Shown in pieces: positions 11,619 through 34,900 of a stretch of DNA of 64,000 bases (the first letter of the stretch is position 1; each line of letters begins with the position of its first letter). The stretch covers positions 52,125-116,124 of the forward strand of contig JALMLS010000305.1 of NCBI GenBank assembly GCA_038496445.1. The letters run 5' to 3'. This stretch comes from Trichosphaerium sp. ATCC 40318. Taxonomy: Eukaryota > Protista > Tubulinea. Under the pieces are notes generated by a model. That model was not told the DNA's origin. It made no database searches and saw only the letters and a program-made list of their open reading frames with translations. Position numbers and translations under genes: made by a program.

Positions 11619-12142
11619 GGAATGCTGGAGTGCTTTTATGGCTTCTCAGAGAAGGAGAGAGGTAAAAAAGTCGCCATGTCTGTTTTGGCGGTCACATTCT
11701 TTCTCATACATTTTCGGAAAAAACCGCGCAGTAGCCACTACGTAAACAGTTCAATTCGTACGGCATACGCAATGATGGTACCTAAGGAGCTTAAATAGCG
11801 CTCCATCACAGTGAAGAAAGGTCTTTTCTGTCAAAACGGACTAGGGTGATACCGCGTAAGGGACTGAAATTCGCCACGTCCAGCTGTGGTCAACAACACG
11901 TTAAACTAAATTATTAAAATGAATTTTTTTTGGAGTGCGAAAAAATGACACACCTTCAATTTCGTCAAATTGTAATGTATTGACGATTTTAAAACACTGA
12001 GTTCGTGTCACTAACGGCTTAAATGCCATTTGTCAACTTAAACTCCAAATCATAACTTCTCGTAAAACAATGACGATTTTAATTATTAAGCCTGACTCTT
12101 GAGACATGTCTCAAATTCTCCGCGCTAAAACTGACACTACTC

Positions 12143-13319
12143 GTGCTTCACGTAAAGATAATATGTTTATGCCAATCTCTTTTCCTTCTTCACGTTTCTT
12201 TTGTATCAACTCACTTTTATAAAAGCACCCACGTGGCATGTAAAGGACCAAATATTGTCACAGATTTCCCACCAGAGATTATTATTGCAAGTATTCTAAG
12301 TTATACATCGGACCATGACAGGGTTTCTGTAGCTCAGTCTTGTCATCTAATGGCTGATATTATTCATTATATTGTTGGTTATAAGCAAGTATGTATTTCT
12401 GATGCTACAGATATTTTCTGCATTAGAAAACAAGGTACATGTACCGTTATGGGATACTTATTTGGTTACCGTCAAACTGAAATGCGTGTAATGGAAGATG
12501 CTTACAAAGAACATCCCGACATGGCAGGTATTATGAAAAACAGTGCAATATATGTTGTGACAAGTCTTTGTACTCATTGTTAGCCGGGTGCCATAGCATC
12601 AAACGCCCTGGTGAATGTGATATAACAAACTATGATCTGAGAGCAATTTCAGGTGTGCATACAATTGATTTAACTAGCTGCAAAGAAATATCAGATGCAG
12701 GTGTAAAAGCACTAAAGGATGCTCATAAAATCAACCTTGCTTTTTGTAAAAATATAACAGATGAAGGTATCAAAGCTCTCAAAGGTGTCCATAGTATTAG
12801 TCTTGAATCTACTGATGTAACAGATGAAGGGATAAAAGCACTATCTAGTGTTCATACTATTTGCCTTGAATCTACTGATGTAACAGATGAAGGGCTAAAA
12901 GCGCTATAGTGTTCATAGCATTATTCTTACTTGCTGTCAAAATATTACTGATGGATCAAAGCGCTTTCTGGTGTTCACACCATTGATCTTAGCTCTTGCT
13001 TCAACATTACAGACCAAGGTGTCAAAGCACTCAAGGTGATAGTATTAGTCTTGAATTTACTGATGTAACAGATGAAGGAATAATAGCACTAGCAGGAGTA
13101 CATAAAATTTGTTTGAAGAGACGTGAACACATCACAGATGAAGGCATTAAAGCGCTTAAAGGTGTTCATAGTATAGATGTTTGTAACACTTCAGTAACAG
13201 GTGAAGCCATCAAAGTACTAAAACCTGAGCTTTGCTTATTTGCTGTAAGTTTAGTTACCAAAGATGAAGTTAAAGAACTAAACAAACCGTTTATTTATAT
13301 TGGGTTAGATTATTGTTAA
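12143..13319 (+). pseudogene. Frameshifted F-box/LRR pseudogene
   Basis: F-box DFPPEIIIASILSY, then ITDEGIKALKGVH repeats broken by non-homopolymer indels near 12555, 12907, 12953 and 13038. Confidence 0.8.
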
Positions 13320-13480: not shown

Positions 13481-16400
13481 TCAATCGTCAAGGAACTCTG
13501 TTTCTGACTCCTTACTTATTTTGCTTCTTTTCTCTAACTCACTTCTTACTTTCTCTAGCTCAATTCTTGCTTTGTCGAGTTCTTCTCTTGTTTCAATAAG
13601 TTCTGTTTGAAATGATACATCATTTGGAGAAATGTCGTCAGAATCATCGCGTGATTTATTACTTATTCCTTGCATTGTCTGCATAACCGTTGTTCCCGAC
13701 TTTGTAGAACTATTTATATTTAAGAATATGTTACTATGGTAATAAGACAACATACTTGTTTGCAACATCGTCTTGCTTGTTTGTAAAAATACGCCAAAAT
13801 TTAGGAGCAAACATCATCAGAAGTGTCACTGTTTAAATGATGAGTGTGTTTACATTGAAGAAGATGTGGTTGTACCTGATGCAATGAACCAAATACCAAC
13901 GGATACAACAATACTCACTGTAGAGTACGATGTGGGCGATGTTATGGTGTACCCACAGATGAGCAAGAGCGAGCACCAAATCAAATCGTTGTAGATGGCA
14001 GCACCCATCCATTTTGATTCGTTGTACAATGAAGGTACATTACGAACAGAAAACGCAAAATAGCATCCTGCGAGTACAAGTATGCCCTTGTAGAATATCA
14101 GAATAGAACAGAGCCTAAATGTAATAACGTACTTCATAGGCTAAAGTGAGAATGAGAAATATTTGGCCATGTTCACTTGAACAGTATTTAAGTTTAAATA
14201 GAATACTATCTGGATCGTTCTTGTGGCTAATTGTATTTCTGGATACTGCTGTCCATAAAATCAATATGATCTGGATGGTCAAGGAAGAATTGAATAACGC
14301 AAACAGAAAAAATAGAAACTCAGAAAAAAAAACCAAGGGGATACAAGTTGGAGAAGAATGCCGATAGATGATAACTTTAAGAGCTCTCTAGAAGATATTA
14401 TCGTCTTCGTAATATTCTTTAACTCAAAAACAAGTTTGATTCTGTAAGTCTTTGCCACAAGAGGTCTACAAACAGCGTTAATATCTGACAACAACAGAAT
14501 AACGCTACTGAAACAAAAACATACACAAGCATTGTTACAAATCCCATTGCTGGAAACCAAACTCTAAGCTCACAGAACACGTCTGATACTGGCGCAATCC
14601 TAAGAAGGACATTAAGAAAAGAAACACACGGAGAAAGGATTGTACGTACCACATAAGTGCACCAAAGTATGATATTAAAATACCAAGAAGAATGACAATC
14701 AAAAACTCTCTTGTCGATGCTCGGATTACATCTGCTGACCTTAAAGGAGATTAACACTTGAAGTAGTAATGTAATGTACCAGTAAAGTATAACAAACACA
14801 AGTGTTGCCAAAGTAGCAATGACACCAATGGCAATAAGTAAGATAATAAAAATTATTGATCTGTCGCTCCAGCTGCTCCATTCCCTCACTGCCCTTGGTC
14901 TCTCTTCGACTACAATTGACAACTGGTTTTCGGATAGTCTAGGCACAAGAGCAACGGTGGCTTTTTCTGCGTCTACTACAAAAACATTGTTGAAGGTGCT
15001 ATTATCCAATTGAGCACGTGAGGCATTAGAAAAAGCCATCAATAAAATGTCATCTCCAACTTCCAACTTTGTAAAGTCTTCAACAGATACTTGTACGACC
15101 CCATTAAACACAGGAGTTTTCAACCACGTTACATGTGAAACACCGAGAGTCATTTGAATAGCACTGTCATTATCAAATGTCATATCGCTCAATACATCAA
15201 TAGGTCCCTAATAATAGCGTTATTTTATGAAATCACGTGTCTTTTAAATGGTCGCAAACTCGATCGTACATTAACAAGAAGTGTTGCGTCTTCAAAAACG
15301 AAATACGTTGTTTGGTCCATCAGTTGAACATCTCGTTCAACAATAAAGGTAGCGCCATCGATGTTGTTTATCCTCGTGTTTTGAGAATTCAGTATCCTTT
15401 CATCAACTTCTTGTACTGTTATGATTCCTGTTTTTCGTAAGAAAGGGTATTGTAGAAGAAAACTAAACAAAGAAACAAATAAACCCTACCTTGATTCTCA
15501 ATAACAAGGTTTATCAATGCAATATGTGAAAGTCTAATCCTTGAATCGCAGTCTGCTAGAAAAACAAGATGTGGAGTTGTTTCTTGCTCAATAGCCCTCT
15601 TTGCGGTAGATGTGCCCTTAACAGCGAAATTAGCACGTGTTGTTATTTCAAAACAATAGTGGTATAGAACATACCGATACAGTTCCTTCGTAGAGAGAGA
15701 ACGCCTTTGTAATTGTGATGGATGCATTGGAAAAGATATTGATAGATCCTCCATCCATTCTCACATAATTAGCGTCGAGGTCAAAAGAAACTTGTATCGG
15801 GAGGTCATCAGGAACATTAATATTATCATAGACATTCCCTTTGAACTGAGTGTTAGAGCAAACTAAGAAGATATAAGCGAAACATACCAAAGTTGCCTCC
15901 AGGTAAAAACCCGTTAAAGTCATAAGGCGACGATTCCGAGAAATGACTGTTTGTCACAGATATAAACTCATCTCCATCGATACCTATCAGATGATGTCAG
16001 TCAAACAATTCTAATAAAAGTAGAGCGTACTGTGTTCAGAGTTTGCAATAAAAGTGCATCCATCGACTGTGTTCTCGCCTCTCATGAACAATCCACCACC
16101 GAGTTCTGCTGTGTTGTTCACAAATGTACAATCGCTGAAAATAGCATTGTCTGAATAATCATACAACACTGCACCACCAGTTCTATCAGCTCTATTATTG
16201 CCAAAGTAACAGTTTGAAACAATTGTGTCAAAGTTGTCGATTCGAGAAAAGAAACCTCCACCCTTTACAAACAACTTAGCATTGCAATATACAAGATTGA
16301 AGACAGTCAACGTACACTGTTCACAGCATAGTTGTCAGTAATATTGAGGTTCTTCAATACAATCCCTGTGTTGAAGTCATGAACGTAGATACCTCCAGCT

Positions 16401-18739
16401 AGGTTTCCTGCAGAGTTGTTCTTGAACACAGAATCTGTGATAGTCACACCTTCGTTGGAAAATCGTACTCTAATGCCACCTGCGATAAAATAAGTACTGT
16501 CTGTGATACATTAAAATCAACATACCACCCCTATCTTCGGCAACGTTATCGATAAACCTGACAGACTCAAGCAACACATTTATGTTTCTGTCATTAATTT
16601 GGATTCCTGCTGCGTCGTCATCAGCGCGATTCTTAATGAAATCGGTGTTTCTGATTGTGATATTGACATTGTCATCCTCTATGGCCGCTCCACCAGCATC
16701 ATCTGTTGATGACCAGTTTTCTTCAAATAGTACGTTATCAATAAGCACGTTTTGAGAATCTGTGATGTGTATCCCTCCTCCTCTTCTTGCTGTGTTTCTC
16801 CTAAAACAACAAAGTCAGTATTAACAGACAAGCCTAAGGAAGTACCTTAACGTGCAGTTATTAAGCACTACTCGATTTGTTTCTATCAAATACATTCCTC
16901 CTCCTGTTTTTGGGTGAAAGTAAGTACTTTAAGATGAAATAGAAAGTGAGCAAGTTGTACCATTTGTTGGAGAGCTGCTATCTTCAAATATTGAGTGAGA
17001 AACTGTCAAGTCATTGACGCCTGAAAATCTAATGGAACCGCCTGCTGCATTGCTTTTCTTGTTTCGAAATGAGCAGTACTCGATTGATACATTGTTGCTA
17101 TCGACAACATTTATACCGCTGCTCATATTCCCTTCAAAAGAAACATGTTCAATTCGAATATATGGACTATCATTGACTAAAAGCTCTTCTTCAGAATCAT
17201 CATTAGTGTTGTTTCTTAGGAAATGTTAGTTTAAGCACAAACGCGTTTTACTGGGCTCTTACCTGAAAGAGCAGTTTTGAATACTTCCCTGTGTTGACAC
17301 AGACATAAATACAGCTAAAAGATGTTGATTATTATGAAGTGGTCACAATGTTTTCATGACAGCGTACTTGCAAGGTCAGTTACCATATTGTTCTCAAAAA
17401 CAGAATTTCTTAAATCTATTGTTGACGCGGTTACATCTATGTTATTGTTCTTAGCTTTGTATATTGTCTTTAGTCTGTACGTATTCCTGATCCGCGACGA
17501 GCTACTCCATTTGTAAATGTGCAACCATCCACTACTGCATTAACTTCAGACAGACTAACGATGCCTATGTTCGAATAAGTCACTCTTGAGGTGTACATGT
17601 CGCAGTACCATTCCATAAAATTGAATTTTTATCAAAGGTACAATCCAGTATCTCGACATTTGCATCTCTCGCACGAACAACACCAAGACCTTGCTCAGGA
17701 CTGATTGTATTGTTGAAAAAGACTGTACTATTGAGGCGATTAGAATCCTAAATGAAAGCACAAAAATGAAACCGAACTTTGTCACTGTCAATGATAAACC
17801 AGGTCCTTCAGCGTTCAGAATACCGTTATCTCTAGAATCGCTTCCTGTAACGGCCGCTTCACCACACGTATTATCTGTGAAAGTACAGTCGCTTAAATAA
17901 ACGAATTAACAAACAAAGTTTTGTATCCCAAAACTATTTTCATTTTAAAAACACGTGCCTGAAAAAGACTCTACAAGATCCAGTCACATATAACACAGAA
18001 CCTCCTCTACCGTCCTAAATACGGTTTATGGTGAGCGCTACCAATTTAAAAAATCCCAAAGAGGTTTAAACGCTTACTTGTGTTCCAATAAACCGAGCTG
18101 GGCATGCAGCTCTTGTGAATTTTATATTTTTGAACGAGATAAAAGTGACGCTAGAATTTGTCCCGCAAGATGTCACCAAAAATAAGTATCTTGTATTTTC
18201 GCCATCAATCACTGTTTCTGAGCTTCCCGTTCCTTATTGAAACTTAGAAAAAATAAACGGAATAAAAAATGTTCAAGTTTGTGAAAGAAAAAAAAAAAAA
18301 ACGTGATTTCTCGTAGTTGTAAACCCGGAACTCGCTCATTTAATAAAACCGACAGGATTGAATTGGTACCTTCAATGGTTATGTTATAGAGTGTAGAAGG
18401 ATCAGGCCAGTCGATAAGCGAATTGTTAGAACCTAGTTTTGTTAAAAGACACTAAAAACAGGAGTGATAAGAATGTTAAATACTCACCTGCATAAGTTCC
18501 CGACGCCATTGTTATGACGTCCCCTGACTCAGATACATTTAAAAGAGTGTATCTAATGCTATAACAAGGGTTTAATTCATCTGTACAGTCCCCAGCGTCC
18601 GTTCCTAGCATACGCATTATTTAAAATGTTTTTGGTTATGCTTACCGTTTGTACTGATGAAACGGCGTCTACCTTGTATCCCTAACGAAATAAAGGCCAA
18701 TAGAACGATAACTCCATAAAGGCGGCACACCTTGTCCAT
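13481..18739 (-). CDS. Class C (GABA-B/Grl-like) 7TM receptor with beta-helix ectodomain, copy 1
   Basis: Signal peptide MDKVCRLYGVIVLLAF; GG-x/FxxN repeats; 7tm_3 motifs CELRVW..GF, LVAKTYRI, RNVPSLYNESKW..IYN and FAPKF; C-terminal heptad coiled coil. More than 20 short introns. Confidence 0.85.
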
Positions 18740-19260
18740 TCTTAAGGTACCGTAAAAGTTTACATTCAAAGGGTAAATTATTTCTCCGTGTGTGCACGTG
18801 GACATAAAAGTCGTAGGAACTTTATCCACGGACTGTCACGTCGATAGTTAAATATTGGCGCTAACAGAAAAGTCATAGAAGGCTTGTGGAGTTTAAAAAA
18901 AACATGCGTGACCACGTGTTAATCCTTAGGGATGGCAGAAATGGTCCGGTCCAGTAGGTGGATAATACTGCTACAAAAACCCTGTATGGATCCAGTTTAG
19001 AGCTGACCAAGGAAGACCGGTTTGGAATCACAATACCGGTATTTTGGTTACGTACAATATGGTTTGAATACTTGAAGAACACATTCTACAGCACGCAGTA
19101 TAGATGTATACACAACAGTGGTAACAAGATACCGCTGGTTTTCTGTTGCTATATTCCATATGCAACTTTGCCGTATCAAGCTTTCATTGCAAGTGCTCTT
19201 ACCCAAAATAAAAATGAAACAGTTTTAAATGGACTCTGTTATGTTTTATTCTTGTACATG

Positions 19261-21053
19261 TTAGTTTGGTATATCAGCACTTTTTACTTCCTTGGTTGTT
19301 AATACGTAAGGTAAAATGGCTTCTCTCAACTTAGGCACAAAGCAAGCGATAATCAGAGCTGTAAAAATCTACAATAGAATTTAACATGAATAAGCACAAG
19401 AAAGGCGGTTGGAATGAATATGTTACTGGCACATGTAACTATCAGTGTAAGTAGTAAAAGAAAAATATATTTAATTGTACCATTAGTTTGACAATCTATA
19501 AAGTACTTGGTGGCGTCAGAGTAGGCACATGTGAAATTTGTTGATGTTGAAGGACAATCAAAAACGCCTCCAGTATCTATGTGATAAATTAGTACAATAC
19601 AATTGCTTGTTCGATTACCGTCATTGTGAATGTTGCTAAATGTTGTTGTATTTCTAAACACCATTTTTAGTATTCTTGATGTGTGGACAATAGTGTTGTA
19701 CCTTATTGTAATGTTCATAGAAGATCCAATCAATGCAGGGGATTGTATTATTGTAGTTAGTTTTCTAAACAAGAATTCAGTACAATTAGGTAGGTTACAC
19801 GCATGTAATATTCTCAACTACACATGAATCTATCTCTGCAGATCCATTGCTAGATGTACCGTTCAAAAACAACGCTCCAGCTATTACACAATTAACATGA
19901 CGCTTGGATAGAGTAACACGTATACCAGTACATCTATCCTCGAATGGCTGAGCTTCTTCCATACTGTTCCCAATAAAAGTAGAGTTCAATACTTTAATAT
20001 CAAGTGAGTTTATGTATACAACTGAAGTGGAGTATTCGAGTTGTGCTGTTTACCAATAAGTATATATATAACACGGATACATACCTTTATATGTTGCAAC
20101 TACGTGATTGTCCTCAAACGAACAAGAATTGATTACAACCTAAATTAACTTAGTATTTAAAAACCAAGCCACAAACGTACTCTATCAACACTGATAAACG
20201 TAGCTAGGAATCCTATGGTCAAAGAGTTATAACATAAACAAGTCATGGCTAAGTATTACCTCTATCTTCCATTCTGTTCAGGAAATACCCTCGTTTAAAA
20301 TTATGTTGAAAATGACAATTATTCACAGAAACTGTTTCGGCTGTTTCAATCCATAATCCCAAAGGGTCAGCAAATCTTTCCAAGTCATCGAACAGTTCAT
20401 GGAAAAGTGAATTGCTTACAGCAACATTTCGACTATTTTCACATTAAGGGAGCGCTCCTTAAATACATGACAAATAGAGCTAGAACACGTGTACCTTGCA
20501 ACTACTTGAATATATCCGTCTTCGCCTGTAACTACCATATTCCTAAGCGATCAGTTAATCAATAAAACTAGAGACTCATAACGTGAATGTTCGTAATGTA
20601 CTCTATGGAAACATTTGCAAAGTCGTTCAAGCTCAATTTACAACCATTTAACGTAAATCCTGATAATGAGATATTTATGTTTTGATTCCCGTTCACCGTC
20701 TCCTGTTGAACTGAGCAAGAAACATTTATGCCTTTACTTAACGCTAAATAATATGTTACAGAACCTGTCAAAAGTGTCAACATACCATAAATGTCTATAC
20801 TTCCGGTACGTTGAGCACTAAACGTGTTGAGAGGAAAATTTAATCCAGTAGAATTGAGAATAAGCGTAGTTGCTCCTGTGCTCAAGTAGCACTCCATATC
20901 AGCGCCACAATTGTGGTCACTTGAAGTTACGACTAAGACGTAAAAATTAGTAATCTTCATATCACTCTGAATAGTATTCGTACTTGTGTTACCGTGGGTT
21001 GGTGCTGCAAGAGCAAAAAACAAAAAGGCAGTACAGAAATAACACAAACTCAT
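19261..21053 (-). pseudogene. Degenerate paralog of the 4005-6303 single-pass beta-helix protein
   Basis: Shares the N-terminal exons (NINISLSGFT) and the C-tail FVPKLREAILPYVL. The frame is disrupted near 20445, and the stalk and most of the TM exon appear to be missing. Confidence 0.55.
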
Positions 21054-21577
21054 TTACTACAGCTATCATAAGCATCATTGGGCGTAATGAAGTGTTATTT
21101 AAGGAAATCGTTTTGAAAAACGCACGTGATGCTATCAGAAAGCTATGCTGATGTGTTCTCGATTTTGGTGAAAAATTTTGTTGGTAGCCGCCTGCTGCTC
21201 TTTATCACTCAGTTAACACGATATCTGAGTGTACAAATTATTCTACGTTATGTGAACTTGAAGTGTGAACAACCTGTGTGTTCAAGTTTTCAGCCAGACT
21301 GACTTTTAGCAAAAAAAATTCCAGTTTCTGCCTGATCTGTCTGACGGATTTGACACTTCTGACAGAACCTTGCAAATCTTACTTTTTAAAATGTGATGCA
21401 CTCATATAGTCAAGCGGAAAAGTTTTACCAATCCAACCGTTTAAACCCACCTGATTTAAGGGGTCAGGACCTCTAATTCTATTGGTTAGACTATGCACAT
21501 CCTCTAAGTTTCTGATTTTAAACAATTGGCAGAGTACTTTTCACAGTCCAGTGTTTTACAAAATATTGAAATGGAAC

Positions 21578-21730
21578 TTACCGTTCTGTTAACAGTAATT
21601 TAAACGCAAACAGCCATAGATCCCAATCAGTGAAGGCTATTTGCCGAAATTACCATTCTGTTAACAGTAATTTAAACACAAAAACAGCCTTAGATCCTAA
21701 TCAGTGAAGGATATTTGGCCTAATTACTGT
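21578..21730. repeat. Imperfect direct repeat, about 73 nt x 2, with palindromic core CTGTTAACAG
   Basis: The unit ttacc.ttctgttaacagtaatttaaac.caaa..cagcc.tagatcc.aatcagtgaagg occurs twice. A similar core is present at about 33688-33713. Confidence 0.75.
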
Positions 21731-22119
21731 TACAATAATGCCTCAAACTAGGCCTTCTAATTTAGGACAGCCCCAGCCTTAATGTCGCCTTCTTTTTTGG
21801 GCAGTATTTTTCCGTTTTTAAGCTTATGAGGCGTTTAATGCCATTCTTTATACCTTCAATAACGTTTTTACATGCTTTGACGTGTATGTAGACAGTTGCA
21901 GTTTTGTGTGTCAGTTTAAAGGTAGAAAAAAAAATGTACACGAAGCACAAATATCACACTGTGCTTTTGTGAGAAACTAATGAGAGTGTACCATTTGACG
22001 ACAGATGCAAGGGTACCATCTTACTTAAAGCTTTAATGTAATATGCAACAGAGTAGGTGCACGTGTTTATCGCTTACAAGAGCTATAGTTAATAATTAAA
22101 GAGCCAATTAGAATTACAT

Positions 22120-22240
22120 GTCACCTAGAAATTCAAGAAAGCCACCTGGTGTAATTGTACCAGAGTGGCTGAAGTCACCATCTATTGTTACAGGACTAGA
22201 TCTAGACAAATTGATTTGGTGGACTAACAATTATAGGTGA
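22120..22240 (-). pseudogene. Orphan exon relic of the single-pass beta-helix family
   Basis: aagaaagccacctggtgtaattgtaccagagtggctgaagtcaccatct...ggactagat aligns with about 4555-4630. Confidence 0.7.
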
Positions 22241-22384
22241 GTTGTCAGACAATACCATAATAACCAAAAAAAAAAAATTGTCCATTACCTTTTTCTAAGC
22301 GCCTCCCGCGCTAAACAACATAATGAGGGCGACCTTCGTAGCTAAAAGTAGCATTTTTTATTTCTAGAACTGCGTGACATTGTT

Positions 22385-25300
22385 TTATAGATCTACAGCA
22401 GGCAGTGTATTGTTTAAGTTCCTAGTTTCTCTCTTTTTCTCCAATAAATCTTGCCTACTTCCTGTTTTCTTCTTTTTTCTTGTTTTCTTTTGTAACTCAC
22501 ATCTAACTTTCTCAAGCTCCTTTCTTGTTTCCTCAAGTTCTTCTTTTGTTTCTTCAAGCTCTGCTTGAAAAGCTTTATAATCTGCACCTGCAGATCCAGT
22601 TGTGTCTTTGGTTTCTTGTAATGACGTATTTGATTTATTAGATTTGGCTGATTTGTTTGATAGATTTCCTCGCCTGCTTGCCATTGTTACTGAAGACCTG
22701 TTTAAAGTAAGTGAGTAGTTGTAATAAAAATAGTTTCCAGCGTACAAGGTTACAACATCATCTTGCTTTGTAAATATACACCAAAGTTTAGGAACGAACA
22801 TCATACCCAGTGTCACTGAAGAAAGTAGTCAGCAAGATAATTCACAAAAAAAGATGTGTAAGGATGGTTGTACCTGACGCTATGAACCAAATACCAAGTG
22901 ATACGATGATACTCACTGTAGAGTACGATGACGGGGATGTTATGGTATACCCACAGATGAGCAAGAGCGAGCACCAAATCAAATCGTTGTAGATGGCAGC
23001 ACCCATCCATTTTGATTCGTTGTACAATGAAGGTACATTACGAACAGAAAACGCAAAATAACATCCTGCAAGTACAAGTATGCCCTCGTAGAATGTTAGA
23101 ATAGAACTTTTGTGTGTTCCAACGTACTTCATAGGCTAGAGTGAGAATGAGAAATATTTGGCCATGTTCACTTGAGCAGTATTCAAGTTTAAATAGAACA
23201 CTATCAGGATCGTTCTTGAATCCAATTGTATTCCTGGATACTGCTGTCCATAAAATCAGTATGATCTGTATGGTCAAGGACTAAATACAAGCGAAAGGAA
23301 GTGAAGTTGGTAAAAAAGAAAAGATAAAGGATACGAGTTGGAGAAGAATACCAACAGAGGTGATTTGTAAAAGTTCTGGGAATGAAATGATGGTATTTGT
23401 CAGACTTTCCATGTCAAATATGAGTTTGATTCTGTATGTCTTTGCGACAAGAGGCCTACGTAGAAAGTATGAATACAATGATAACACCAAAACAACATAC
23501 GCAAGCATTATGACAAATCCCACTGCTGGAAACCAAACTCTAAGCTCACAGAACGCATCTGATACTGGCGCAATCCTAAGAAGGAAATTAGGAAAAGAAA
23601 CACACGGAGAAAGGGATTGTACGTACCACATAAGTGCACCCAAGTATGATATTAAAATACCAAGAAGAATGACAATCAGAAACTCTCTTGTTGATGCTCG
23701 GAGGATAACTGATGTATTCCTAAAAGACGGTTATCAAAGATACTCAGGTTAGTATTTGTACCAATAAACGATAACAATTGTTGCTGTTACCAACGTTGCT
23801 ATGACACCAATGGCAACAAGCAAGATAACAATGATTGATGCTGTATCAGTCCATCTGCGCCATTCTTTTACTGCCCTTGGTTTCTCCTCAACTACAATTG
23901 ACAACTGGTGTTCGTTTAAACTAGTTATGAGAGCTATAGTGGTATTGTTTTCGTCAACAAAAACAACACTGAACGTGGTATTATCCAAAAGAGCACGTGA
24001 GGTGTTAGAAAAAGTCATCAATAAAATGTCATCTCCAACTTCCAACTTTGTAAAGTCTTCAACAGATACTCGTATGACCCCATTAAACGCGGGAGTTTTC
24101 AACCACGTTACATGTGAAACACCGAGAGTCATTTGAATAGCACTGTCATTATCAAATGTCATATCGCTTGCCACATCAATAGGACCCTAACAACAGCATT
24201 AGTGTTTTAAGTCTCACGTGATACTTGGAAAACACGTGATAATAATTAAAAAAGACGTACGTTCACAAGAAGTGTTGATTTTTGGAAATAAAAATGAGTT
24301 GTGGTATCCATCAGTTGTATATCTCTTTCAACAATCATAGTCGCTCCATCAACATTATTTATCTTTGTATTTTCTGTATTAAAAACCCGAACATCAATCT
24401 CCCTTATTTGTAACGTTCCTTGCGTAATACTGTCAGTTCAAAGGTACCACTAACTACAAAAAACACACCTTGATTCTCAATAACGAGATTCCTCAATGCA
24501 ATATTTGACAACCTAAACTGTGATATGCAGTCTGGTCCCAATACCAGGTGTGGGTTTGTTTCTAGTGATTGCTTAACCAACCTTTTCGATGTTGGGACAC
24601 CCTAATAGACAAAATCAGTCTTCCTCTAGGACCCCAATTTAAGCGTACAGTGATAGTTCCTTGAGAAAGATTAAACTCGCTGTTGACATTAACAGACACA
24701 CTAGAACGTATTCTAATGTGTCCTGAATTCATATTAAAGACATTGGTATCAAGGTTCTCAACAACTTCAATGGTATAATCAGGGATGTGTATGCTGTCAT
24801 AAACGTTTCCTGTATTTCCAATATTAAACTAAGAGTAAGAAAAAAGTAAGAACATACCAAAGTTGCCTCCAGGAAGAAACCCTTCAAAGTCATAGGGCGA
24901 CGATTCCGAGAAATGACTGTTTGTCACGGATATAAACTCATCTCCATCAATACCTATCAAATGATGTCAGTCGAACAATAGTAGAAATATAGGAACGTAC
25001 TGTGTTCAGAGTTTGCAATAAAAGTGCATCCATCGACTGAGTTCTCGCCTCTCATGAACAATCCACCACCGAGTTCAGCTACGTTGTTCACAAATGTACA
25101 ATCGCTGAAAATAGCATTGTCTGAATAATCATACAACACTGCACCACCAGTTCTATCAGCTCTATTATTGCCAAAGTAACAGTTTGTTATTGTTGAGTTT
25201 TGGTTATTAATGCGAGAAAAGAAGCCTCCACCCTTTAAAAACAACTTAGTATCGCAATATTCAAGATTGAAGACAGTCAACATACACTGTTCACAGCATA

Positions 25301-27211
25301 GTTGTCAGTAATATTGAGGTTCTTCAACAAAATTCCTATGTTGTTGTCATGAACATAGATACCTCCAGCTATGCTTCCTGCAGAGTTGTTCTTGAACACA
25401 GAATCTGTGATAGTCACTCCTTCGTTTCTAAACCGAACTCTAAGACCACCTACGATAACATTAGATTCGTTGAAGCTGAATCAGTTGACAAATAGCTTAC
25501 CTGCTCTGTCTTCTGCTACGTTATTGATGAAACTCGAAGATTCAAGAGTCACATTTGTATTATCATCGTTAATCTGAAGTCCTCCTGCATCATCAACAGC
25601 ATAGTTCTCTATGAACTGACTGTTTCTAATAGTGACATTCACATTGTCATCATTTACTGCTAGTCCACCAGAGTCAACAGTTACTCTGTTTCTCTCAAAG
25701 AGCACGTGATCTATTAGTATGTTTTCACAACTAACCATAAATAATCCACCTCCTCTTCTTGCTATATTTCCTCTGTAGAAAATAAAGAATGAGCACTATG
25801 ATCATCTCTCAGTGCACCTTACCTAAATGTTGAGTTCTTCACAACTATCTCGCTTAAAGTATCCAAGTAAACCGCTTTGAAATAGTCAGTTTGTGGTAGT
25901 CACGTGTCTATGTAAACGTACTTCCTCTACCAGGTTGTGTATTGTTCTCAAACAAGGAATTGTTTATATTTATTGTTGAATCATCAGCATCTAGAAATAG
26001 TTATAATTTGAAGCATGAAAAGTGTTCTTACATATCGCTGCACCACCTTCTGCGCTTCCGTTTGTGAAATTACAAGAATCTATTGTTAAATCAACTCGAA
26101 TCACATTAACTACGCCTACAGTCGAAATAAGAACAGTTGAAAGATAAGATTGGTTGTGTACCAAGTGCGGTTACTTTATTGTTGTTAAAGACACTATTGA
26201 AAACGTTGACAATTGAGTCTCTTGCTCGTATAACGCCATACCCTATCAGAGGGCTTATAGTATTGTCTAAAAACTTGACACTAAACTGATAGTAAGGTTA
26301 AATTTGAGTTAAGGGTAAACTTACTTTGTCAACGTTAATATTGGCCCTTCTACATTCACTATACCATTACGTCTAGGATTAGTACTATCATCACTCGATA
26401 ATCCACACGTATTATCAATAAAAGCGCAATCACTACTCGAAGAGAATTAAAAAAAAAAAAAGGTAACGGAGAAATCAAACCAACCTCCCGTTACCAAGAA
26501 ATATTAAAAAAAACGAACACGTGCCTAAAAAAAATACTACAAGATCCTGACGCATAAAAAACGGAACCTCCTCTACCACGCTAATCACGAGTAAGCAAAA
26601 CCCCAAACTAGAACGAAAAGCCAAATCAAGCGTACCGGTGTATCTGGAAACTCTTCAGGGCATACAGCGTTTTTAAAAATAATATTTTGAAACGAAATAA
26701 AGGTCACGTGATTATCTGTTCCACATTCGGGAGCCAAAAATAAGTAGTTTGCGTTTTCGCCATCAATAATTGATTCGCCGTTGGTTGTTCCTATTACAGG
26801 CGCCTTTATTAACAAACGAACTAGTACATTGTAGCCGTACCTTTAATGGTTATGTTGTTAGGCGTAAAGTCATTTGGCCATTGTAGGCGAGAGTTGTTGG
26901 AGCCTAGTTTATTACCGCATCAAATACGAACATACTCGATAACTGGCAAATTCCTTACCTCTGTATGTACCCTGACCCATTTCTATGACATCTCCAGGCA
27001 CAGATACAGAAAAAAGAGTGTAACGAAGGCTTAGACATGGATTGCTTTCATCCAAACATTCCCCAACGTCCGTTCCTAGCGACTACATTAACCTTTAAAG
27101 TTTTTTCATTTTTGTACCCGTTGTAGTTACGAAACGACGGCTGCACTGTATCTCTAATGTGAACAAAGCCAATACCAAGCCAAGCCAAACCCCGCTACTT
27201 AGTATTTTCAT
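22385..27211 (-). CDS. Class C 7TM receptor with beta-helix ectodomain, copy 2
   Basis: Same architecture as copy 1. Starts MKILSSGVWLGLVLALF; NESKW motif; TM7 ends MMFVPKLW; coiled coil ELEETKEELEETRKELEKVR. Confidence 0.85.
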
Positions 27212-27674
27212 TCTCCACGTGGCCGGTGTACACGTAATGTAATTGTAATGTGTACCACGTTTGACAATCCAAAAACATGTAATCTTACTATGAGATGTAT
27301 GATACGAGCTACATCAAAAATTAGCATTCATTGTCGCATACAAGTGTGAATGGTATAGACAGTTTTTAATATCACACCTATGTGAATAACATGCTGTGTC
27401 TTAGACAAGTTAAACATCACGTGATTATTATAAATAGATAAGCAGTTAATTAGGTTATTATGGTACGCTGGCACGTCCGGAACAAATTTCGGAGCCTGAT
27501 CGTATTTTTTTCGATGTAATAATCTTGTAACTAAAGTGGCAACGGCTCTCGCCTCTTGTTTGAAAAAAAAATAAAAACACGAACTAGCATGCATGCAATT
27601 TTTATCACTGACAAATATTTAGAAGTACAAAACACCAAGTTTCCTTTAATAATATACTACTGCGTGACATTGTT

Positions 27675-30600
27675 TTATAGATCTACAGTATGCATTTTAT
27701 TGTTTAAGCCGCTACTATGTGAAATAGTTTCTCTCTTTTTCTCCAATAAATCTCGCGTGCTTCCTGTTTTCTTCTTTTTTCTTGTTTTCTTTTGTAACTC
27801 ACATCTAACTTTCTCAAGCTCCTTTCTTGTTTCCTCAAGTTCTCGTTTTGTTTCTTCAAGCTCTGTTTGAAAAGTTTTATGATCTACACCTGCAGGTCCA
27901 GTTGTGTCTTTGGTTTCTTGTACTGACGTATTTGATTTATTGGATATATTCGATTTATTGGATTTGCTTGATTTATTTCCTCGCCTGGCTGCCATTGTTA
28001 CTGACCTTGAAGACCTATTTATAGTAGTGAGCAATGTTGTAAATAAAAGTTTTAGTAACATACAAGGCTACAACGTCATCTTCCTTGTTTGTAAAAATAC
28101 ACCAAAGTTTAGGAACGAACATCATACCCATTGTCACTGAAGAAAGCAGTCAGCAAGATAATTCACAAAAAAAAGATGCGTAAGGATGGTTGTACCTGAC
28201 GCTATGAACCAAATACCAAGTGATACGATGATACTCACTGTAGAGTACGATGACGGGGATGTTATGGTGTATCCACAGATGAGCAAGAGTGAGCACCAAA
28301 TCAAATCATTGTAGATGACAGCACTCATCCATTTTGATTCGTTGTACAATGAAGGTACATTACGAACAGAAAACGCAAAATAACATCCTGCAAGTACAAG
28401 TATGCCCTTTGTAGAATGTTAGAACAGAACGATTCTCGTATCAGAATAGAACAGAGCCTAAATGTAATAACGTACTTCATAGGCTAAAGTGAGAATGAGA
28501 AATATTTGGCCATGTTCGCTTGAGCAGTATTCAAGTTTAAATAGAACACTATCAGGATCGTTCTTGAATCCAATTGTATTCCTGGATACTGCTGTCCATA
28601 AAATCAGTATGATCTGGATGGTCAAGGACTAGATACAAAGAAGCGAAACGAAGTGAAGTTGGTAAAAAAGAAAAGATAAAGGATACGAGTTGGAGAAGAA
28701 TACCAACAGAGGTGATTTGTAAAAGTTCTGGGAATGATATGATGGTATTCGTTAGACTTTCCATGTCAAATATGAGTTTGATTCTGTATGTCTTTGCGAC
28801 AAGAGGCCTACGTAGAAAGTATGAATACAATGATAACACCAAAACAACATACGCAAGCATTATGACAAATCCCACTGCTGGAAACCAAACTCTAAGCTCA
28901 CAGAACGCATCTGATACTGGCGCAATCCTAAGAAGGAAATTAGGAAAAGAAACACACGGAGAAAGGGATTGTACGTACCACATAAGTGCACCCAAGTATG
29001 ATATTAAAATACCAAGAAGAATGACAATCAGAAACTCTCTTGTTGATGCTCGGAGGATAACTGATGTATTCCTAAAGGGTTATCAACCGAAATAACACAA
29101 ACAATTGTTTGTACCAATAAACGATAACAATTGTTGCTGTTACCAACGTTGCTATGACACCAATGGCAACAAGCAAGATGACAATGATTGATGCTGTATC
29201 AGTCCATCTACGCCATTCTCTCACTGTCCTTGGTTTCTCCTCAACTACGATTGACAACTGGTCTTTATTTGCCCTAGTTATGAGAGCTATAGTGGTATTG
29301 TTTTCGTCAACAAAAACAACACTGAACGTGGTATTATCCAAAAGAGCACGTGAGGTGTTAGAAAAAGTCATCAATAAAATGTCATCTCCAACTTCCAACT
29401 TTGTAAAGTCTTCAACAGATACTCGTATGACCCCATTAAACGCAGGAGTTTTCAACCATGTTATGTATGAAACACCGAGAGTCATTTGAATAGCACTGTC
29501 ATTATCAAATGTCATATCGCTCAATACATCAATAGGTCCCTAATAATCGCATTAGTTTTGTAAGTCTCACGTGATACTTGGAAAGTGATAATAATTACAA
29601 AAGACGTACGTTCACAAGAAGTGTTGATTTTTGGAAATAAAAATGAGTTGTGGTATCCATCAGTTGTACATCTCTTTCAACAATCACAGTCGCTCCATCA
29701 ACATTATTTATCTTTGTGTTTTCTGTATTAAAAACCCGAACATCAATCTCCTTTATTAGTAACGTTCCTTGTGCGATACAGTTAGTTCATAGCCACAACT
29801 ACAAGCTATATAAAACGTACCTTGATTCTCAATAACGAGATTCCTCAATGCAATATTTGACAACCTAAACTGTGATATGCAGTCTGGTCCCAATACTAGG
29901 TGTGGGTTTGTTTCTAGTGATTGCTTAACCAACCTTTTCGATGTTGGGACACCCTAATAAACGAAATCAGTCTTAAGCGCCCAATTTAAGCGTACAATGA
30001 TAGTTCCTTGAGAAAGATTAAACTCGCTGTTGACATTAATTGACACACTAGAATGTATTCTAATGTGTCCTACTATCATATTAAAGACATTGGTATCAAG
30101 GTTCTCAACAACTTCAATGGTATAATCAGGGACGTGTATGCTCTCATAAACATTTCCTGTGTTTCCAATATTAAACTAAGAGTAAGAAAAAAGTAAGAAC
30201 ATACCAAAGTTGCCTCCAGGTAGAAACCCTTCAAAGTCATAAGGCGACGATTCCGAGAAATGACTGTTTGTCACGGATATAAACTCATCTCCATCAATAC
30301 CTATCAAATGATGTCAGTCGAACAATAGTAGAAATATAGGAACGTACTGTGTTCAGAGTTTGCAATAAAAGTGCATCCATCGACTGAGTTCTCGCCTCTC
30401 ATGAACAATCCACCACCGAGTTCAGCTACGTTGTTCACAAATGTACAATTGCTGAAAATAGCATTATCTGAAAAGTCATATAAGGCCCCTCCGCCAGTTC
30501 TATCAGCTCTATTATTGCCAAAGTAACAGTTTGTTATTGTTGAGTTTTGGTTATTAATGCGAGAAAAGAAACCTCCTCCCTTTAAAAACAACTTAGCATT

Positions 30601-33029
30601 GCAATATACAAGATTGAAGACAGTCAACGTACACTGTTCACAGCATAGTTATCCGTAATATTGAGGTTCTTCAATACAATCCCTATGTTGTCGTCGTGAA
30701 CGTAGACACCTCCACCGATATTTCCCGCAGAGTTGTTTTTGAACACAGAATCTGAAATAGTCACTTGTTCATTTTCAAATCGAAGTCTAATGCCACCTAC
30801 AATAACATTAGATTCGTTGATGCTGAACCAGTTGACAAATAGCTTACCTGCCCTGTCTTCTGCTACGTTATTGATGAAAATCAAAGATTCAAGAGTCACA
30901 TTTTTATTTTCATCGTTAACTTGAAGTCCTCCTGCATCATCAGCAGCATGGTTCTCTATGAATTGACAGTTTCTAACATTCACGTTCACATTTCTATCGG
31001 TAATCTGAAGTCCTCCTGCATCAACAACAGCGTAGTTTCCCTCGAACTGACTACTTTGTATGGCGACATTCGTATTATTTTCATCAATCTGAAGTCCTCC
31101 TGCATTATTACCAGCATGGTTCCCCGTGAACTGACTGTTTTGTATAATGACATTCGTATTTCCTTCGTTAACGTTAAGTCCTCCTGCATTATTATCAGCG
31201 TGGTTCCCCGTGAACTGACTGTTTTGTATAACGACATTTGTATTTCCTTCGTCAATCTGAAGTCCTCCTGCATCATCAACAGCATAGTTCTCTATGAACT
31301 GACTGTTTCTAATAGTGACATTCACATTGTCATCATTTACTCCTAGTCCGCCAGAGTCAACAGTTACTCTGTTTCTCTCAAAGAGCACGTGATCTATTAG
31401 TATGTTTTCACAACTAATCATAAATAATCCACCTCCTCTTCTTGCTATGTTCCCTCTATAGAAAATAAAGAATGAGCACTATGATCATCTCTCAGTACAC
31501 CTTACCTAAATGTTGAGTTCTTCACAACTATCTCGCTTAAAGTATCCAAGTAAACCGCTTTGAAATAGTCAGTTTGTGGTGGTCACGTGTCTATGTAAGC
31601 GTACTTCCTCTACCAGGTTGTGTATTGTTCTCAAACAAGGAATTGTTTATATTTATTGTTGAATCATCAGCATCTAGAAATAGTTATAATTTGAATCATG
31701 AAAAGTGTTCTTACATATTGCTGCACCAGCATCTGCGCTTCCGTTTGTGAAATTACAAGAATCTATTGTTAAATCAACTCGAATCACATTAACTACGCCT
31801 ACAGTCGAAATAAGAACAGTTGAAATACAAGATTGGTTGTACCTATTCCGGTTACTTTATTATTGTTAAAGACGCTATTGAAAACGTTGACAATTGAGTC
31901 TCTTGCTCGTATAACGCCATACCCTATCAGAGGGCTTATAGTATTGTCTAAAAACTTGACACTAAACGAATAAAGTAAGACTACATTATGACTTGGTGAG
32001 CGTAAGGTGTCTATCTACTCCGTATTTTAAGACAGATTTAGATTGACTTAAGGCAAAATAGTGTATTAATTTATCAAAAACTAGTGTGATAGGCGTACTT
32101 GGTCATGGTTAATATCAATAGCGATGAATTCCCTTCGACGTTCACGATGCCATTGCGTCTAGGTTGAGTACTATCATCACTGGATAATCCACATGTATTA
32201 TCAATAAAAGTGCAGTCACTAATCGAAGAGTTAAAAAACGGTAAAGTGGATAAATCTCAACGTGCGCCTACCGCAATGCCAAGACAACAAAAAAAAAAAA
32301 ACTAAACCCGCATACCTGAAAAAAATACTACAGTCTCCTTCCGCGTAAAAAACAGAACCTCCTCTGCCATTCTAATCACAAGTAAACAAAAACAAACCAA
32401 ACGAATAAAAACAATCCAAACCCAAAACTCAAACTCAAAACAACATTAAAATCACGTACCGGTGTATCTGGAAACTCTTCAGGGCATACAGCGCTTTTAA
32501 AAATAATATTTTGAAACGAAATAAAAGTCACGTGATTATCTGTTCCACATTCGGGAGCCAAAAATAAGTAGTTTGCGTTTTCGCCATCAATAATTGTCTC
32601 TCCGTCATTTGTTCCTATTACGGGCGCCTTTATTAAAAAAGAAGCATATTGAATATGTACCTTTGATGGTTATATTGTTAGGTGTATAGCCATTAGGCCA
32701 TTGTAGGCGAGAGTTGTTGGAGCCTAGTTTATTACCATATCAAAATACGAACATACTCGACATGACTATTCCCTTACCTTTGTATGTACCCTGACCCATT
32801 TCTATGACATCTCCAGGCACAGATACAGAAAAAAGAGTGTAACGAAGGCTTAGACATGGATTGTTTTCATCCAAACATTCCCCAACGTCCGTTCCTAGCA
32901 TATACATTAACAATAACGCGTTTTCGGGAAAACCTTACCCGTTGTAGTTACGAAACGACGGCTGCACTGTATCTCTATAAAGAACAAAGCTACCAATACA
33001 ACCCCAACCCCTCTACTTAGTATTTTCAT
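27675..33029 (-). CDS. Class C 7TM receptor with expanded beta-helix ectodomain, copy 3
   Basis: Near-identical to copy 2 over most exons and introns, plus four extra 28-aa rungs. Confidence 0.85.
30860..31340 (-). repeat. Intragenic 84-nt (28-aa) tandem repeat AGGLQIxxxNTNVxIxNSQFxxNxAxxx
   Basis: aagtcctcctgca recurs at 30924, 31008, 31092, 31176 and 31260, an exact 84-nt period. Confidence 0.9.
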
Positions 33030-33979: not shown

Positions 33980-34900
33980 GCAATAAAATTAATACGCATG
34001 GTAGGAAGAGACGCTGGAGATTGTACAGATGAATTACACCCTTGTCATAGTATTAGATACACTCTTTTAAAGGTATCTGAGCCAAAGGGACGTCATAACT
34101 ATGTCTGGAACATATGGAGGCGTATTTAGCATTCAAAGTACGTGTCTGATGAAAGTATCTTGTTAACCAAACCAACATCATGCGTGAGCAAGGTCTTGTA
34201 TTGAGGTGTACATGTCACCTAGAGTAGTGACTTATTCGAACATAGGCATTGTTAGTCTGAATCAAGTTAATGCAATAGTGGATGGTTGCACGTTTACAAT
34301 GGAGTAGCTCGTCGCGGATCAGGATACGTACAAGAACAATAACATAGATATAACCGCGTCAACAATAGATTTAAGAAATTCTGTTTTTGAGAACAACATG
34401 GTAACTGACCTTGCAAGTACGCTATCATGAAAACATTGTGACCACTTTATAATAATGAACAGCTTTTAGCTGTTTTATGTTATTGCCAACATAGGGAAGT
34501 ATTCAAAACTGCTCTTTCAGGAAAGCAGTAACCCGTTCCTGTTTAGGAGAAACATAGCAAGAGAGGAGACTTCTCAATACGAGGGCACTGTTTGTGGAAG
34601 CAGGTCTCGACCAGACAATGCTGCTGGAGCGGCCATAGAAGGTGACAATGTCAACGTCACAATCACAAAAAACCGATTTCGTTGCGAATCGCACTGATAT
34701 CGACGCAGCAGGAATCCAAATTAATGACAGAAACATAAATGTGTTGCTTGAGTCTGTTAGGTTTATCAATAACATTGCAAGATAGAGGTATGCTGTGTTA
34801 ATGTGTATCACGATAGTACTTATTTTATTGTAGGTGGTATGCTGTAGTAGTAAGATTTTCCAGGAAGGAGTGACTATCACAGATTCTGTGTTTAAGACAA
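33980..34900 (+). pseudogene. Inverted, internally deleted pseudogene of receptor copy 1 (ectodomain only)
   Basis: Successive blocks match the reverse complement of about 18620-18490 (DAGDCTDEL.PC.SIRYTLL), 17700-17230 and 16700-16430. Introns are retained, with frameshifts and large deletions. Confidence 0.85.

Follow-up and report, generated by a model that had tools for sequence, protein, structure and literature searches.

Three intact genes (g1, g2 and g3) lie in tandem on the minus strand at 13481-33029 of the window, the 64,000-nucleotide stretch of DNA from the marine amoeba Trichosphaerium sp. ATCC 40318 analysed here, and share one layout: a signal peptide, a cysteine cap, 28-residue POMP/Pmp-type rungs, a beta-helix junction, a class C (family 3, glutamate-receptor-type) seven-transmembrane (7TM) domain and a heptad coiled-coil tail. 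They are further members of a layout that is already known, and unstudied, from the Dictyostelium receptors GrlP, GrlQ and GrlR. On balance, we think it probable that they are functional, expressed receptors, in which a rod and a class C dimer act as a sensor of extended or multivalent ligands, and whose family grows by tandem duplication.

Gene structure and expression

The gene models were obtained by protein-guided spliced alignment (Table 1). None of the three contains an internal stop, each has 23-26 spliceosomal introns of 40-137 nt, and all introns are GT-AG except for one GC-AG in g1 and one in g2. A tandem family with these same elements had been proposed in the first-pass annotation, and every element listed there was recovered in all three genes, the interval given coinciding exactly with the g1 stop codon (13481) and the g3 ATG (33029).

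The ectodomain and the 7TM domain are encoded as single genes and transcripts. In each gene a single exon crosses the boundary between the ectodomain and TM1. A 2216-nt spliced cDNA contig joins the g1 beta-helix exons to the TM1 exon and matches the g1 boundary exon (14780-15207) with zero mismatches, contradicting the alternative that the two parts belong to separate transcripts. The fifteen g1 splice joints listed agree with spliced cDNA contigs from four runs and three studies; these Logan contigs are fragmentary, their longest linkage falling short of a whole g1-g3 mRNA. The layout recurs in full in the transcript-derived paralogs P0006, P0001 and P0060. Of these, the MMETSP ORF P0001 is a chimera put together from g1, g3 and g2 during assembly, carrying g3-specific residues at 781-1200 and g2-specific residues at 1201-1238. 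Because the listed elements recur in three paralogous copies and 15 splice joints are seen in cDNA, a chance origin is far from plausible.

Table 1. Features of the receptor locus, in window positions
Feature	Position	Strand	Description	Evidence
g1	13481..18739	-	27 exons, 1271 aa, beta-helix class C GPCR	spliced alignment, cDNA contigs
g2	22385..27211	-	25 exons, 1189 aa, beta-helix class C GPCR	spliced alignment; P0001 residues
g3	27675..33029	-	24 exons, 1331 aa, beta-helix class C GPCR	spliced alignment; P0001 residues
Signal peptide	g3 32939..33029; g1 18646-18739; g2 27118-27211	-	exon 1	N-terminal hydrophobic stretch; alignment
Cys cap	g3 32778..32894; g1 18488-18604; g2 26959-27075	-	exon 2, GTDxGxCxxExxPCxS	alignment
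Beta-helix, g3	30348..32723	-	exons 3-12; right-handed, parallel, 28-residue POMP-type rungs	profiles, AF2, VIA, 28-aa register
Beta-helix equivalents	g1 16031-18432; g2 25001-26903	-		as for g3 exons 3-12
Tandem array	30898..31328	-	~5 copies of an 84-nt unit inside g3 exon 11	TRF; alignment
Membrane-proximal junction	g3 29222..30300; g1 14887-15983; g2 23869-24953	-	~290 aa, predicted irregular beta-helix	AF2, VIA
g3 exon 17	29115..29539	-	last ectodomain rungs, (R/K)EWxxW linker, TM1	open frame across boundary
Exon 17 equivalents	g1 14780-15207; g2 23762-24186	-		open frame; g1 exon covered by cDNA contig
Class C 7TM core	g3 28064..29221; g1 13756-14886; g2 22746-23868	-	TM1-TM7	7tm_3, mGlu2, Foldseek, AF2
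Cytosolic tail	g3 27675..28014; g1 13481-13709; g2 22385-22697	-	last exon	21-nt periodic DNA, weak Leu_zip, alignment
Coiled coil, g3 tail	27800-27872	-	~4 heptads, then basic patch	21-nt periodic DNA
Decayed remnant of g1-like copy	33986..34896	+	head-to-head, beside g3	tblastn, spliced alignment

The 7TM core and cytosolic tail

Judged from profile, helices and switch residues, all of which agree with the class, the 7TM core is a genuine class C domain. The Pfam profile 7tm_3 (PF00003; gathering score 33.5 bits) matched raw exon ORFs (1.3e-08 and 3.1e-09), with single g3 exons alone exceeding the gathering score, and matched P0001 over model positions 2-251 of 251 (7.7e-46, 157.2 bits) as well as P0006 (150.4 bits), neither of which gave a Pfam match to 7tm_2, GPS or GAIN. 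By sequence, the best solved relatives of the 7TM part are mGlu2 (E 2.9e-25), GPR158 (E 3e-17) and GABA-B2 (E 2e-16), and the best 50 Foldseek matches obtained with it are all class C receptors. AF2 placed seven long helices downstream of residue 923, at a confidence of only 45-65 in this part, and the hydropathy peaks together with the N-terminal signal peptide indicate seven transmembrane helices with the N-terminus outside. AKTYRI, the TM3 and ECL2 cysteines, YNESK and PK(L/F)W occur alike in g1, g2 and g3; in the alignment to mGlu2 these cysteines, K3.50 (in KTYRI), E6.35 (in NES(K/R)), W6.50 and the PK of TM7 are kept. The heptad periodicity of the tail is visible in the DNA as 21-nt repeats; the coiled coil itself extends over only ~4 heptads, its 'a' positions are weak, and so is the Pfam match to Leu_zip.

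The ectodomain

The cap motif reads GTDAGDCTDELNPCYS in g1 and GTDVGECLDE(S/N)NPCLS in g2 and g3, and is present in the paralog P0006 as well. Behind it, Beta_helix (PF13229) was matched by raw exon ORFs (1.1e-12), by P0001 (3.2e-39) and by P0006 (1.2e-26). P0006 additionally matched Chlam_PMP (PF02415; 8e-08) and TIGR01376 (33.4 bits, cut-off 15), Chlam_PMP being borderline in the exon ORFs of the window genes (19-26 bits against a cut-off of 20.6). AF2 modelled the beta-helix at pLDDT > 90, with ~90 or more across roughly 300 residues and a strand pattern of 28 residues, the register that the g3 rungs follow; in the AF2 model and the VIA matches, three-stranded rungs stack as a right-handed solenoid. 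The best VIA fold matches were phi29 gp12 and AlgE4 (both Z 31.0) and Vag8 (Z 30.3), others at the top being PL6 alginate lyases (Z 26.7-29.1), AlgG and capsule depolymerases. Resemblance to polysaccharide enzymes and tailspikes comes with this fold and is no evidence for a glycan ligand. In sequence, the ectodomain comes closest to outer-membrane repeat and adhesin-type proteins of bacteria (24-28% identity, E down to 1e-38). The rod is acidic and D/N-rich in g1 and g3 (D+N 18-19%; D+E 110-117 vs K+R 56-61), and each protein carries 21-25 N-glycosylation sequons.

The junction was modelled at pLDDT 71, one 100-residue stretch being left unmodelled in the full-length AF2 run, and in VIA it most resembles the parts of autotransporter passengers nearest their C-terminus (Hap 730-976, Z 14; Hbp 817-1079, Z 13.2). 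TM1 follows the last beta-strand after only ~10 residues, with neither a hinge nor a cysteine-rich domain between them, and Pfam gave no match to NCD3G. No Venus flytrap (ANF_receptor, Peripla_BP or Bmp) was matched by Pfam in P0001, P0006 or P0060; the more distant 7TM matches P0007 and P0061 do carry ANF_receptor. The autotransporter beta-barrel likewise gave no Pfam match in P0001 or P0006, whose C-terminus is the 7TM core. The first-pass annotation had described an acidic, Pmp-like parallel beta-helix in place of a flytrap, and profile, model and composition all bear this out.

Duplication and selection

The family grows through tandem duplication, with rod length shifting via gain or loss of 84-nt rung units. 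The alignment shows five more rungs in g3 than in g2, located at the exon 11 array, which accounts for the difference. Among the genes, dN/dS is 0.10-0.25 in the 7TM part and 0.22-0.40 in the ectodomain, so that the 7TM is the most constrained part of the proteins; it retains 64% identity to the distant paralog P0006. Between g1 and g3, dS declines from 5' to 3' (1.18, 0.68, 0.43), and their introns are alignable in the 3' half only. The similarity of the 7TM half between copies would reflect constraint and probably also gene conversion. Of the diversification annotated at first, only changes in copy number and rung number are borne out; with dN/dS averaging below 1 in both parts, it is not driven by positive selection. 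The decayed remnant beside g3 retains a cap and a few rungs with in-frame stops, and tblastn and spliced alignment found neither junction nor 7TM in it.

Comparison with known systems

Class C receptors are the textbook case of activation through Venus flytrap closure, the flytrap being typical of the class and not universal, as GPRC5 and GPR158 lack it. Among solved structures, the mGlu receptors 2, 3 and 4 come nearest to the 7TM in both sequence and fold; they share the TM3-ECL2 cysteines, K3.50, E6.35, W6.50 and PK with g1-g3, but possess a flytrap and a cysteine-rich domain, neither of which is detectable here. The GABA-B receptor (GB1/GB2) resembles g1-g3 in its class C 7TM, the absence of a cysteine-rich domain, a short stalk to TM1 and a cytosolic coiled coil past TM7, which in GABA-B mediates heterodimerisation; it differs in sensing GABA by a flytrap, and the tails have no detectable sequence relation. 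GPR158/GPR179 and GPRC5 likewise have class C cores without a flytrap, and demonstrate that such a core is able to function with a non-PBP ectodomain (Cache in GPR158) or with hardly any; their ectodomain fold is unrelated, and to our knowledge these receptors occur in animals only. Adhesion GPCRs (class B2) are alike in concept, a large adhesive ectodomain on a 7TM, but have a 7tm_2 core and the GAIN/GPS autoproteolysis domain, absent in g1-g3. The rod itself resembles the passengers of Chlamydia Pmp/POMP proteins and autotransporters (28-residue rungs with GG(A/G/L) and FxxN, right-handed parallel beta-helix), and the junction the irregular C-terminal section of Hap and Hbp. Where those proteins carry an outer-membrane beta-barrel translocator, g1-g3 carry a eukaryotic 7TM core, and unlike Pmp they are eukaryotic genes with spliceosomal introns and a rod bearing N-glycosylation sequons.

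The layout as such has been known since 2007 from a single remark by Prabhu et al. (PMC1885808), according to which D. discoideum GrlP, GrlQ and GrlR (1095-1604 aa) lack a BMP domain and begin with a long region homologous to the polymorphic membrane protein of Chlamydia. Matched to this published description, g1-g3 have the same architecture: a family-3 7TM and a long Pmp-homologous N-terminus without BMP or flytrap, in an amoebozoan. The caveat in the first-pass annotation, that GrlP might already be a precedent for the fusion, was therefore well placed, and the novelty it otherwise implied has to be given up. The Trichosphaerium genes belong to a different amoebozoan lineage; they lie in tandem arrays, vary in rung number and encode a coiled coil in the tail. 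Word-seeded searches and an exhaustive junction-exon search returned no Dictyostelium proteins, and the searchable literature yielded no functional or structural work on the GrlP/Q/R-type layout. Most Dictyostelium family-3 receptors are without homologues in the solitary amoebae sampled in a 2023 survey (PMC10445921); an expressed, expanded tandem family in Trichosphaerium shows that the design either is older and wider in Amoebozoa than published surveys suggest, or arose twice.

Proposed mechanism and alternatives

Our preferred reading is a dimer that senses polymers or surfaces, for which we infer both ligand and mechanism. The signal peptide would send an ectodomain of ~785-915 residues to the cell surface, where it would form one continuous right-handed parallel beta-helix, running from a disulfide-type cap through ~15-20 regular 28-residue POMP/Pmp rungs to ~10 irregular rungs resembling the end of an autotransporter passenger, a rod of ~12-15 nm at ~4.8 A per rung. 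As in GABA-B, the 7TM interface together with the coiled coil of the tail may hold two protomers in a homo- or heterodimer. Ligands that are extended or multivalent, for instance polysaccharides or the surfaces of prey, algae or substrate, could dock along the lateral face of the rods and shift the relative position of the protomers, and the 7TM dimer, so switched, would act on a heterotrimeric G protein. The coiled coil of the tail and the retained switch residues hint at obligate dimerisation and at coupling to G proteins. Sensing of contact, glycans or cations, as first annotated, would be compatible with the fold and is speculative. A rigid rod of this length, joined through ~10 residues, would make activation by flytrap closure impossible for g1-g3, and its exclusion would make the family a natural test case for other ways of switching a class C dimer.

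Several other readings were weighed against this one. That the models are gene-prediction artefacts joining separate ectodomain and 7TM genes, or pseudogenes, would draw on the chimeric nature of the public ORF P0001 and on the decayed remnant adjoining g3; with one exon covering both the ectodomain end and TM1, g1-specific spliced cDNA contigs across that boundary, all three frames intact and selection purifying, it is refuted for practical purposes and almost certainly wrong. It is unlikely, though less so, that the proteins are surface adhesins or test components, serving adhesion to substrate or prey or the membranous test, with the class C core as a mere anchor that does not signal through G proteins. 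The adhesin-type bacterial relatives of the ectodomain, the resemblance of the junction to the end of autotransporter adhesin passengers and the lack of a hinge or flytrap to pass on a conformational change would suit such a role, but an anchor would need neither seven helices nor a conserved cytosolic coiled coil, and it is the 7TM that is most constrained and keeps the class C activation residues.

We hold it to be distinctly improbable that the beta-helix is a working enzyme, a polysaccharide lyase, hydrolase or epimerase that acts at the cell surface on wall polymers of algae or bacteria, with the 7TM anchoring it or sensing its products. The top folds do include the mannuronan epimerase AlgE4, PL6 alginate lyases, AlgG and capsule depolymerases, and seaweed digestion by Trichosphaerium is on record in reports that the genome paper (PMC10521059) cites; but a common fold is no proof of a common function, the sequence matches are to non-enzymatic POMP/Pmp repeats, no CAZy-type Pfam family (Pectate_lyase, Glyco_hydro_28 or similar) was matched at E < 0.001, and adhesin rods typically have just such highly regular 28-aa rungs and lack long loops for an active site. 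Just as hard to credit is self/non-self or mating recognition, in which paralog rods of variable length would bind between cells of a polymorphic, multinucleate, fusing amoeba and the tandem array would supply the specificities: diverged paralogs with varying rung number, and tails that could mediate heterodimers, fit the idea, against which stand a mean ectodomain dN/dS below 1 and the few differences between cDNA runs.

Within the favoured reading of a dimeric receptor, the isolation of the strain from the seaweed Sargassum (PMC10521059) gives a concrete ligand hypothesis, namely algal or bacterial wall polymers, for which Dictyostelium offers a tractable system; the reports cited in the genome paper also include use of macroalgal carbohydrates by Trichosphaerium. 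A more far-reaching version, which we regard as unlikely, would make g1-g3 part of a large family of pattern-recognition GPCRs that was assembled independently, a POMP rod of bacterial origin having been joined to a class C core in an event distinct from the GrlP/Q/R fusion. Such receptors would read polysaccharide or cell-wall surfaces of seaweed or prey, the dimer being activated without a flytrap (for example by ligand cross-bridging or force) and rod length being tuned by rapid gain and loss of rungs.

Layout of the receptor array

Three co-linear series of stop-to-stop open reading frames, all minus-strand and located at 13.4-33.1 kb, were modelled by protein-guided spliced alignment, with GC donors allowed, as three tandem genes, g1, g2 and g3. 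Each encodes a signal peptide, a Cys cap, a beta-helix, a junction of about 290 residues between the regular rungs and TM1, a class C 7TM domain and a coiled-coil tail. The span 13481-33029, proposed for a receptor family in the first-pass annotation, coincides exactly with the g1 stop and the g3 start. All three reading frames are open throughout, and their introns (40-137 nt) are GT-AG, the sole exception being intron 5, which is GC-AG in g1 and g2; in g1 this splice is backed by the transcript ORF P0001. The G+C content of the window (37%) and its short introns fit the values published for the ATCC 40318 draft genome (37.69% G+C, mean intron 75 bp; PMC10521059). The g2-g3 spacing is 463 bp.

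Features of the receptor array and its surroundings (window coordinates)
Feature	Coordinates	Strand	Details
g1	18739-13481	minus	27 exons, 1271 aa (spliced alignment)
g2	27211-22385	minus	25 exons, 1189 aa (spliced alignment)
g3	33029-27675	minus	24 exons, 1331 aa (spliced alignment)
Exon coding last ectodomain rungs, linker and TM1, g1	15207-14780	minus	
Same exon, g2	24186-23762	minus	
Same exon, g3	29539-29115	minus	
Intron 5, g1	17958	minus	GC donor
Intron 5, g2	26524	minus	GC donor
Intron 5, g3	32315	minus	GT donor
Small separate gene	19356-21053	minus	between g1 and g2
Decayed g1-like receptor remnant	33986-34896	plus	head-to-head with g3; in-frame stops

A class C core joined to a beta-helix rod

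The proposal that these genes encode class C receptors is supported by full-length matches to the Pfam 7tm_3 profile in the transcript-derived proteins P0001 (7.7e-46) and P0006 (9.3e-44), and by the switch residues of g1-g3 themselves. The best matches of the 7TM domain among solved structures are mGlu2 (2.9e-25), mGlu3/4/7/5, GPR158 (3e-17) and GABA-B2 (2e-16). Alignment to solved class C receptors shows conservation of the TM3 and ECL2 Cys, the K of KTYRI, the E of NES(K/R), the TM6 Trp and the TM7 PK motif, and each of the three genes carries the whole set. Seven helices are present in the AF2 model, whose best 50 Foldseek matches are without exception class C receptors; feature searches of the ESM Atlas returned only generic 7tm_3 clusters. 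No ANF_receptor, Peripla_BP, Bmp or NCD3G domain was detected in the beta-helix receptor proteins, in which a Beta_helix match takes the place of the flytrap, as had been suggested. More distant 7TM relatives (P0007 and P0061) carry the flytrap.

The linkage of ectodomain and 7TM in one gene, which the first-pass annotation had put forward, is established by an exon spanning the boundary in each gene together with spliced cDNA contigs of g1. In four public runs from three studies, at least 15 g1 introns are absent from the contigs, at exactly the positions of the model; read on the plus strand, the skipped segments begin with CT and end with AC, and are therefore GT..AG on the gene strand. A 2216-nt contig with zero mismatches links the TM1 exon (14778) to the beta-helix exons (17214) across the junction, and additional splice joints connect TM1 with the tail. 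One contig has SMART template-switch sequence at a loose end, so the public runs are cDNA. In run X5, a contig terminates at 18435 in a SMART template-switch oligo, placed as would suit a plus-strand molecule; this end may stem from antisense transcription or, as an artefact, from internal strand invasion.

P0001, an MMETSP0405 transcript ORF of Trichosphaerium sp. ATCC 40318 (CAMPEP_0168523514), was 99% identical to the query in an exhaustive HMMER search with the junction/TM1 exon. Diagnostic sites reveal it as an assembly chimera of g1 (residues 1-780), g3 (781-1200) and g2 (1201-1238), and near residue 52 it differs from g1 by a pair of local frameshifts; it is thus evidence for transcription of all three genes and by itself no proof of linkage. 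The same layout recurs in two independent transcript sequences of complete or nearly complete length, the paralog P0006 (1275 aa) and the putative paralog P0060 (903 aa, 5'-truncated).

In the cytosolic tail, about four conserved heptads begin some 45-60 residues after TM7 and show up in the DNA of g1, g2 and g3 as a 21-nt period; a basic patch follows them in g2 and g3.

Structure of the ectodomain

The ectodomain had been likened to the parallel beta-helices of Chlamydia Pmp proteins, and profile and fold matches agree: Pfam Beta_helix matches P0001 at 3.2e-39, and P0006 is matched by Chlam_PMP and TIGR01376 POMP_repeat. The rung register is 28 residues, of the form xNxAxxDAGGLQIxDxNxNVxIxNSQFx, matching the POMP repeat model in length. 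For P0006 (residues 20-1215), AF2 gave a model with a mean pLDDT of 64.7, its regular rungs being at about 90 or more. In a wide structural search the ectodomain matched phi29 gp12 and the AlgE4 epimerase (both Z 31.0), the Vag8 autotransporter passenger (Z 30.3) and PL6 alginate lyases (Z 26.7-29.1), followed by many tailspikes and depolymerases. Modelled alone, the 290-residue junction is also predicted to be a beta-helix (pLDDT 71); structurally it comes closest to the C-terminal end of two autotransporter passengers, Hap 730-976 (Z 14) and Hbp 817-1079 (Z 13.2), with Z values that are just moderate by repeat-fold standards. Since the junction too is predicted as beta-helix, the models are best read as showing the entire ectodomain as one rod, with about 10 residues between its last strand and TM1. 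The ectodomains of g1 and g3 carry 21-22 N-glycosylation sequons each and are, as anticipated, acidic and D/N-rich (D+N 18-19%; D+E 110-117 vs K+R 56-61).

Beyond Trichosphaerium, the ectodomain is closest in sequence to bacterial proteins of the outer-membrane-repeat, choice-of-anchor-Q and parallel-beta-helix types (24-28% identical, E as low as 1e-38) and to one Gefionella protein; none of these nearest relatives contains 7tm_3. An exhaustive representative search with the junction exon found two true relatives, both from Trichosphaerium, which indicates that the junction module is restricted. The two-domain proteins in word-seeded searches were all Trichosphaerium-type.

Comparison with Dictyostelium receptors

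Previous work has described three family-3 receptors of Dictyostelium discoideum, GrlP (1407 aa), GrlQ (1095 aa) and GrlR (1604 aa), which are without a BMP domain and have N-termini homologous to Chlamydia polymorphic membrane protein (Prabhu et al. 2007, PMC1885808). The beta-helix class C architecture is therefore precedented, as the first-pass annotation had cautioned it might be. We liken g1-g3 to these receptors by their described architecture, and GrlP, GrlQ and GrlR were absent from the matches of the word-seeded searches and of the exhaustive search with the junction exon. A 2023 survey of amoebozoan GPCRs describes GrlP as conserved throughout Dictyostelia and reports that the solitary amoebae it sampled lack homologues of most family-3 receptors; in its text PbH1 appears just in the abbreviation list (PMC10445921). 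Our literature searches found neither functional work on GrlP, GrlQ or GrlR nor a publication combining 7tm_3 with a beta-helix, and GPCRs are unmentioned in the Trichosphaerium genome paper (PMC10521059). We regard g1-g3 as additions to a type of class C receptor that is known but essentially unstudied; they extend it to a new lineage, where it forms an expanded tandem family.

Evolution within the array

The proteins of g2 and g3 share 92% of their helix residues, 93% of the junction and 98.5% of the 7TM, and g1 differs more from both (55-60%, 69% and 81-82% identity, respectively). Five additional rungs in g3 all lie within one 823-nt exon, which includes an 84-nt tandem unit in 5.1 copies. 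dN/dS is 0.10-0.25 in the 7TM, 0.28-0.40 in the junction and 0.22-0.36 in the helix; the g2-g3 tail value of 1.45 is based on very few changes and carries no interpretation. The suggestion that the family is diversifying by duplication thus holds for tandem expansion and rung number, without overall positive selection: as an explanation for the diversity of the ectodomain, positive selection was rejected on average (0.22-0.40, averages over three sequences). Between g1 and g3, dS falls from 5' to 3' (1.18, 0.68, 0.43), being 1.18 in the beta-helix and 0.43 in the 7TM, and introns are alignable only in the 3' half; these two patterns suggest either gene conversion or a shared 3' half of younger age. 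Any conversion looks to be limited to the receptor-core half of the two genes.

Proposed mechanism and alternatives

We propose that the receptor would dimerise via its 7TM domain and the coiled coil of its tail, by analogy with GABA-B, that an extended or multivalent ligand would bind along the rod, and that protomers would then re-position to bring about activation, instead of flytrap closure. ATCC 40318 was isolated from Sargassum, and reports cited in the genome paper describe Trichosphaerium as digesting seaweeds and using macroalgal carbohydrates (PMC10521059). It is therefore reasonable to consider wall polysaccharides as a first candidate ligand class, for which the fold matches alone would be insufficient.

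The rivals to such a receptor are an adhesin whose 7TM serves only as an anchor, an active enzyme and a self-recognition system. Among the observed features, g1-g3 possess the elements of an N-out, C-in topology and an intact class C switch set, their ectodomain is a rigid rod in the models, and the genes are expressed and under purifying selection.

Neighbours of the array

Pieces of the remnant beyond g3 align to g1 residues 26-58 (the cap), 240-293 and 442-523, and neither junction nor 7TM lies downstream of it. The small gene between g1 and g2 encodes an N-terminal signal peptide and a C-terminal hydrophobic anchor, with weak Beta_helix (E 0.006) and Pectinesterase (E 0.1) signals, and from its sequence may be a single-pass beta-helix surface protein. 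The spacer between this gene and g2 holds a 74-nt tandem repeat (21574-21717; two copies, 88% matches). Just upstream of the array lies an RNI-type leucine-rich repeat gene on the plus strand (12083-13316; LRR_6, E 6.5e-14).
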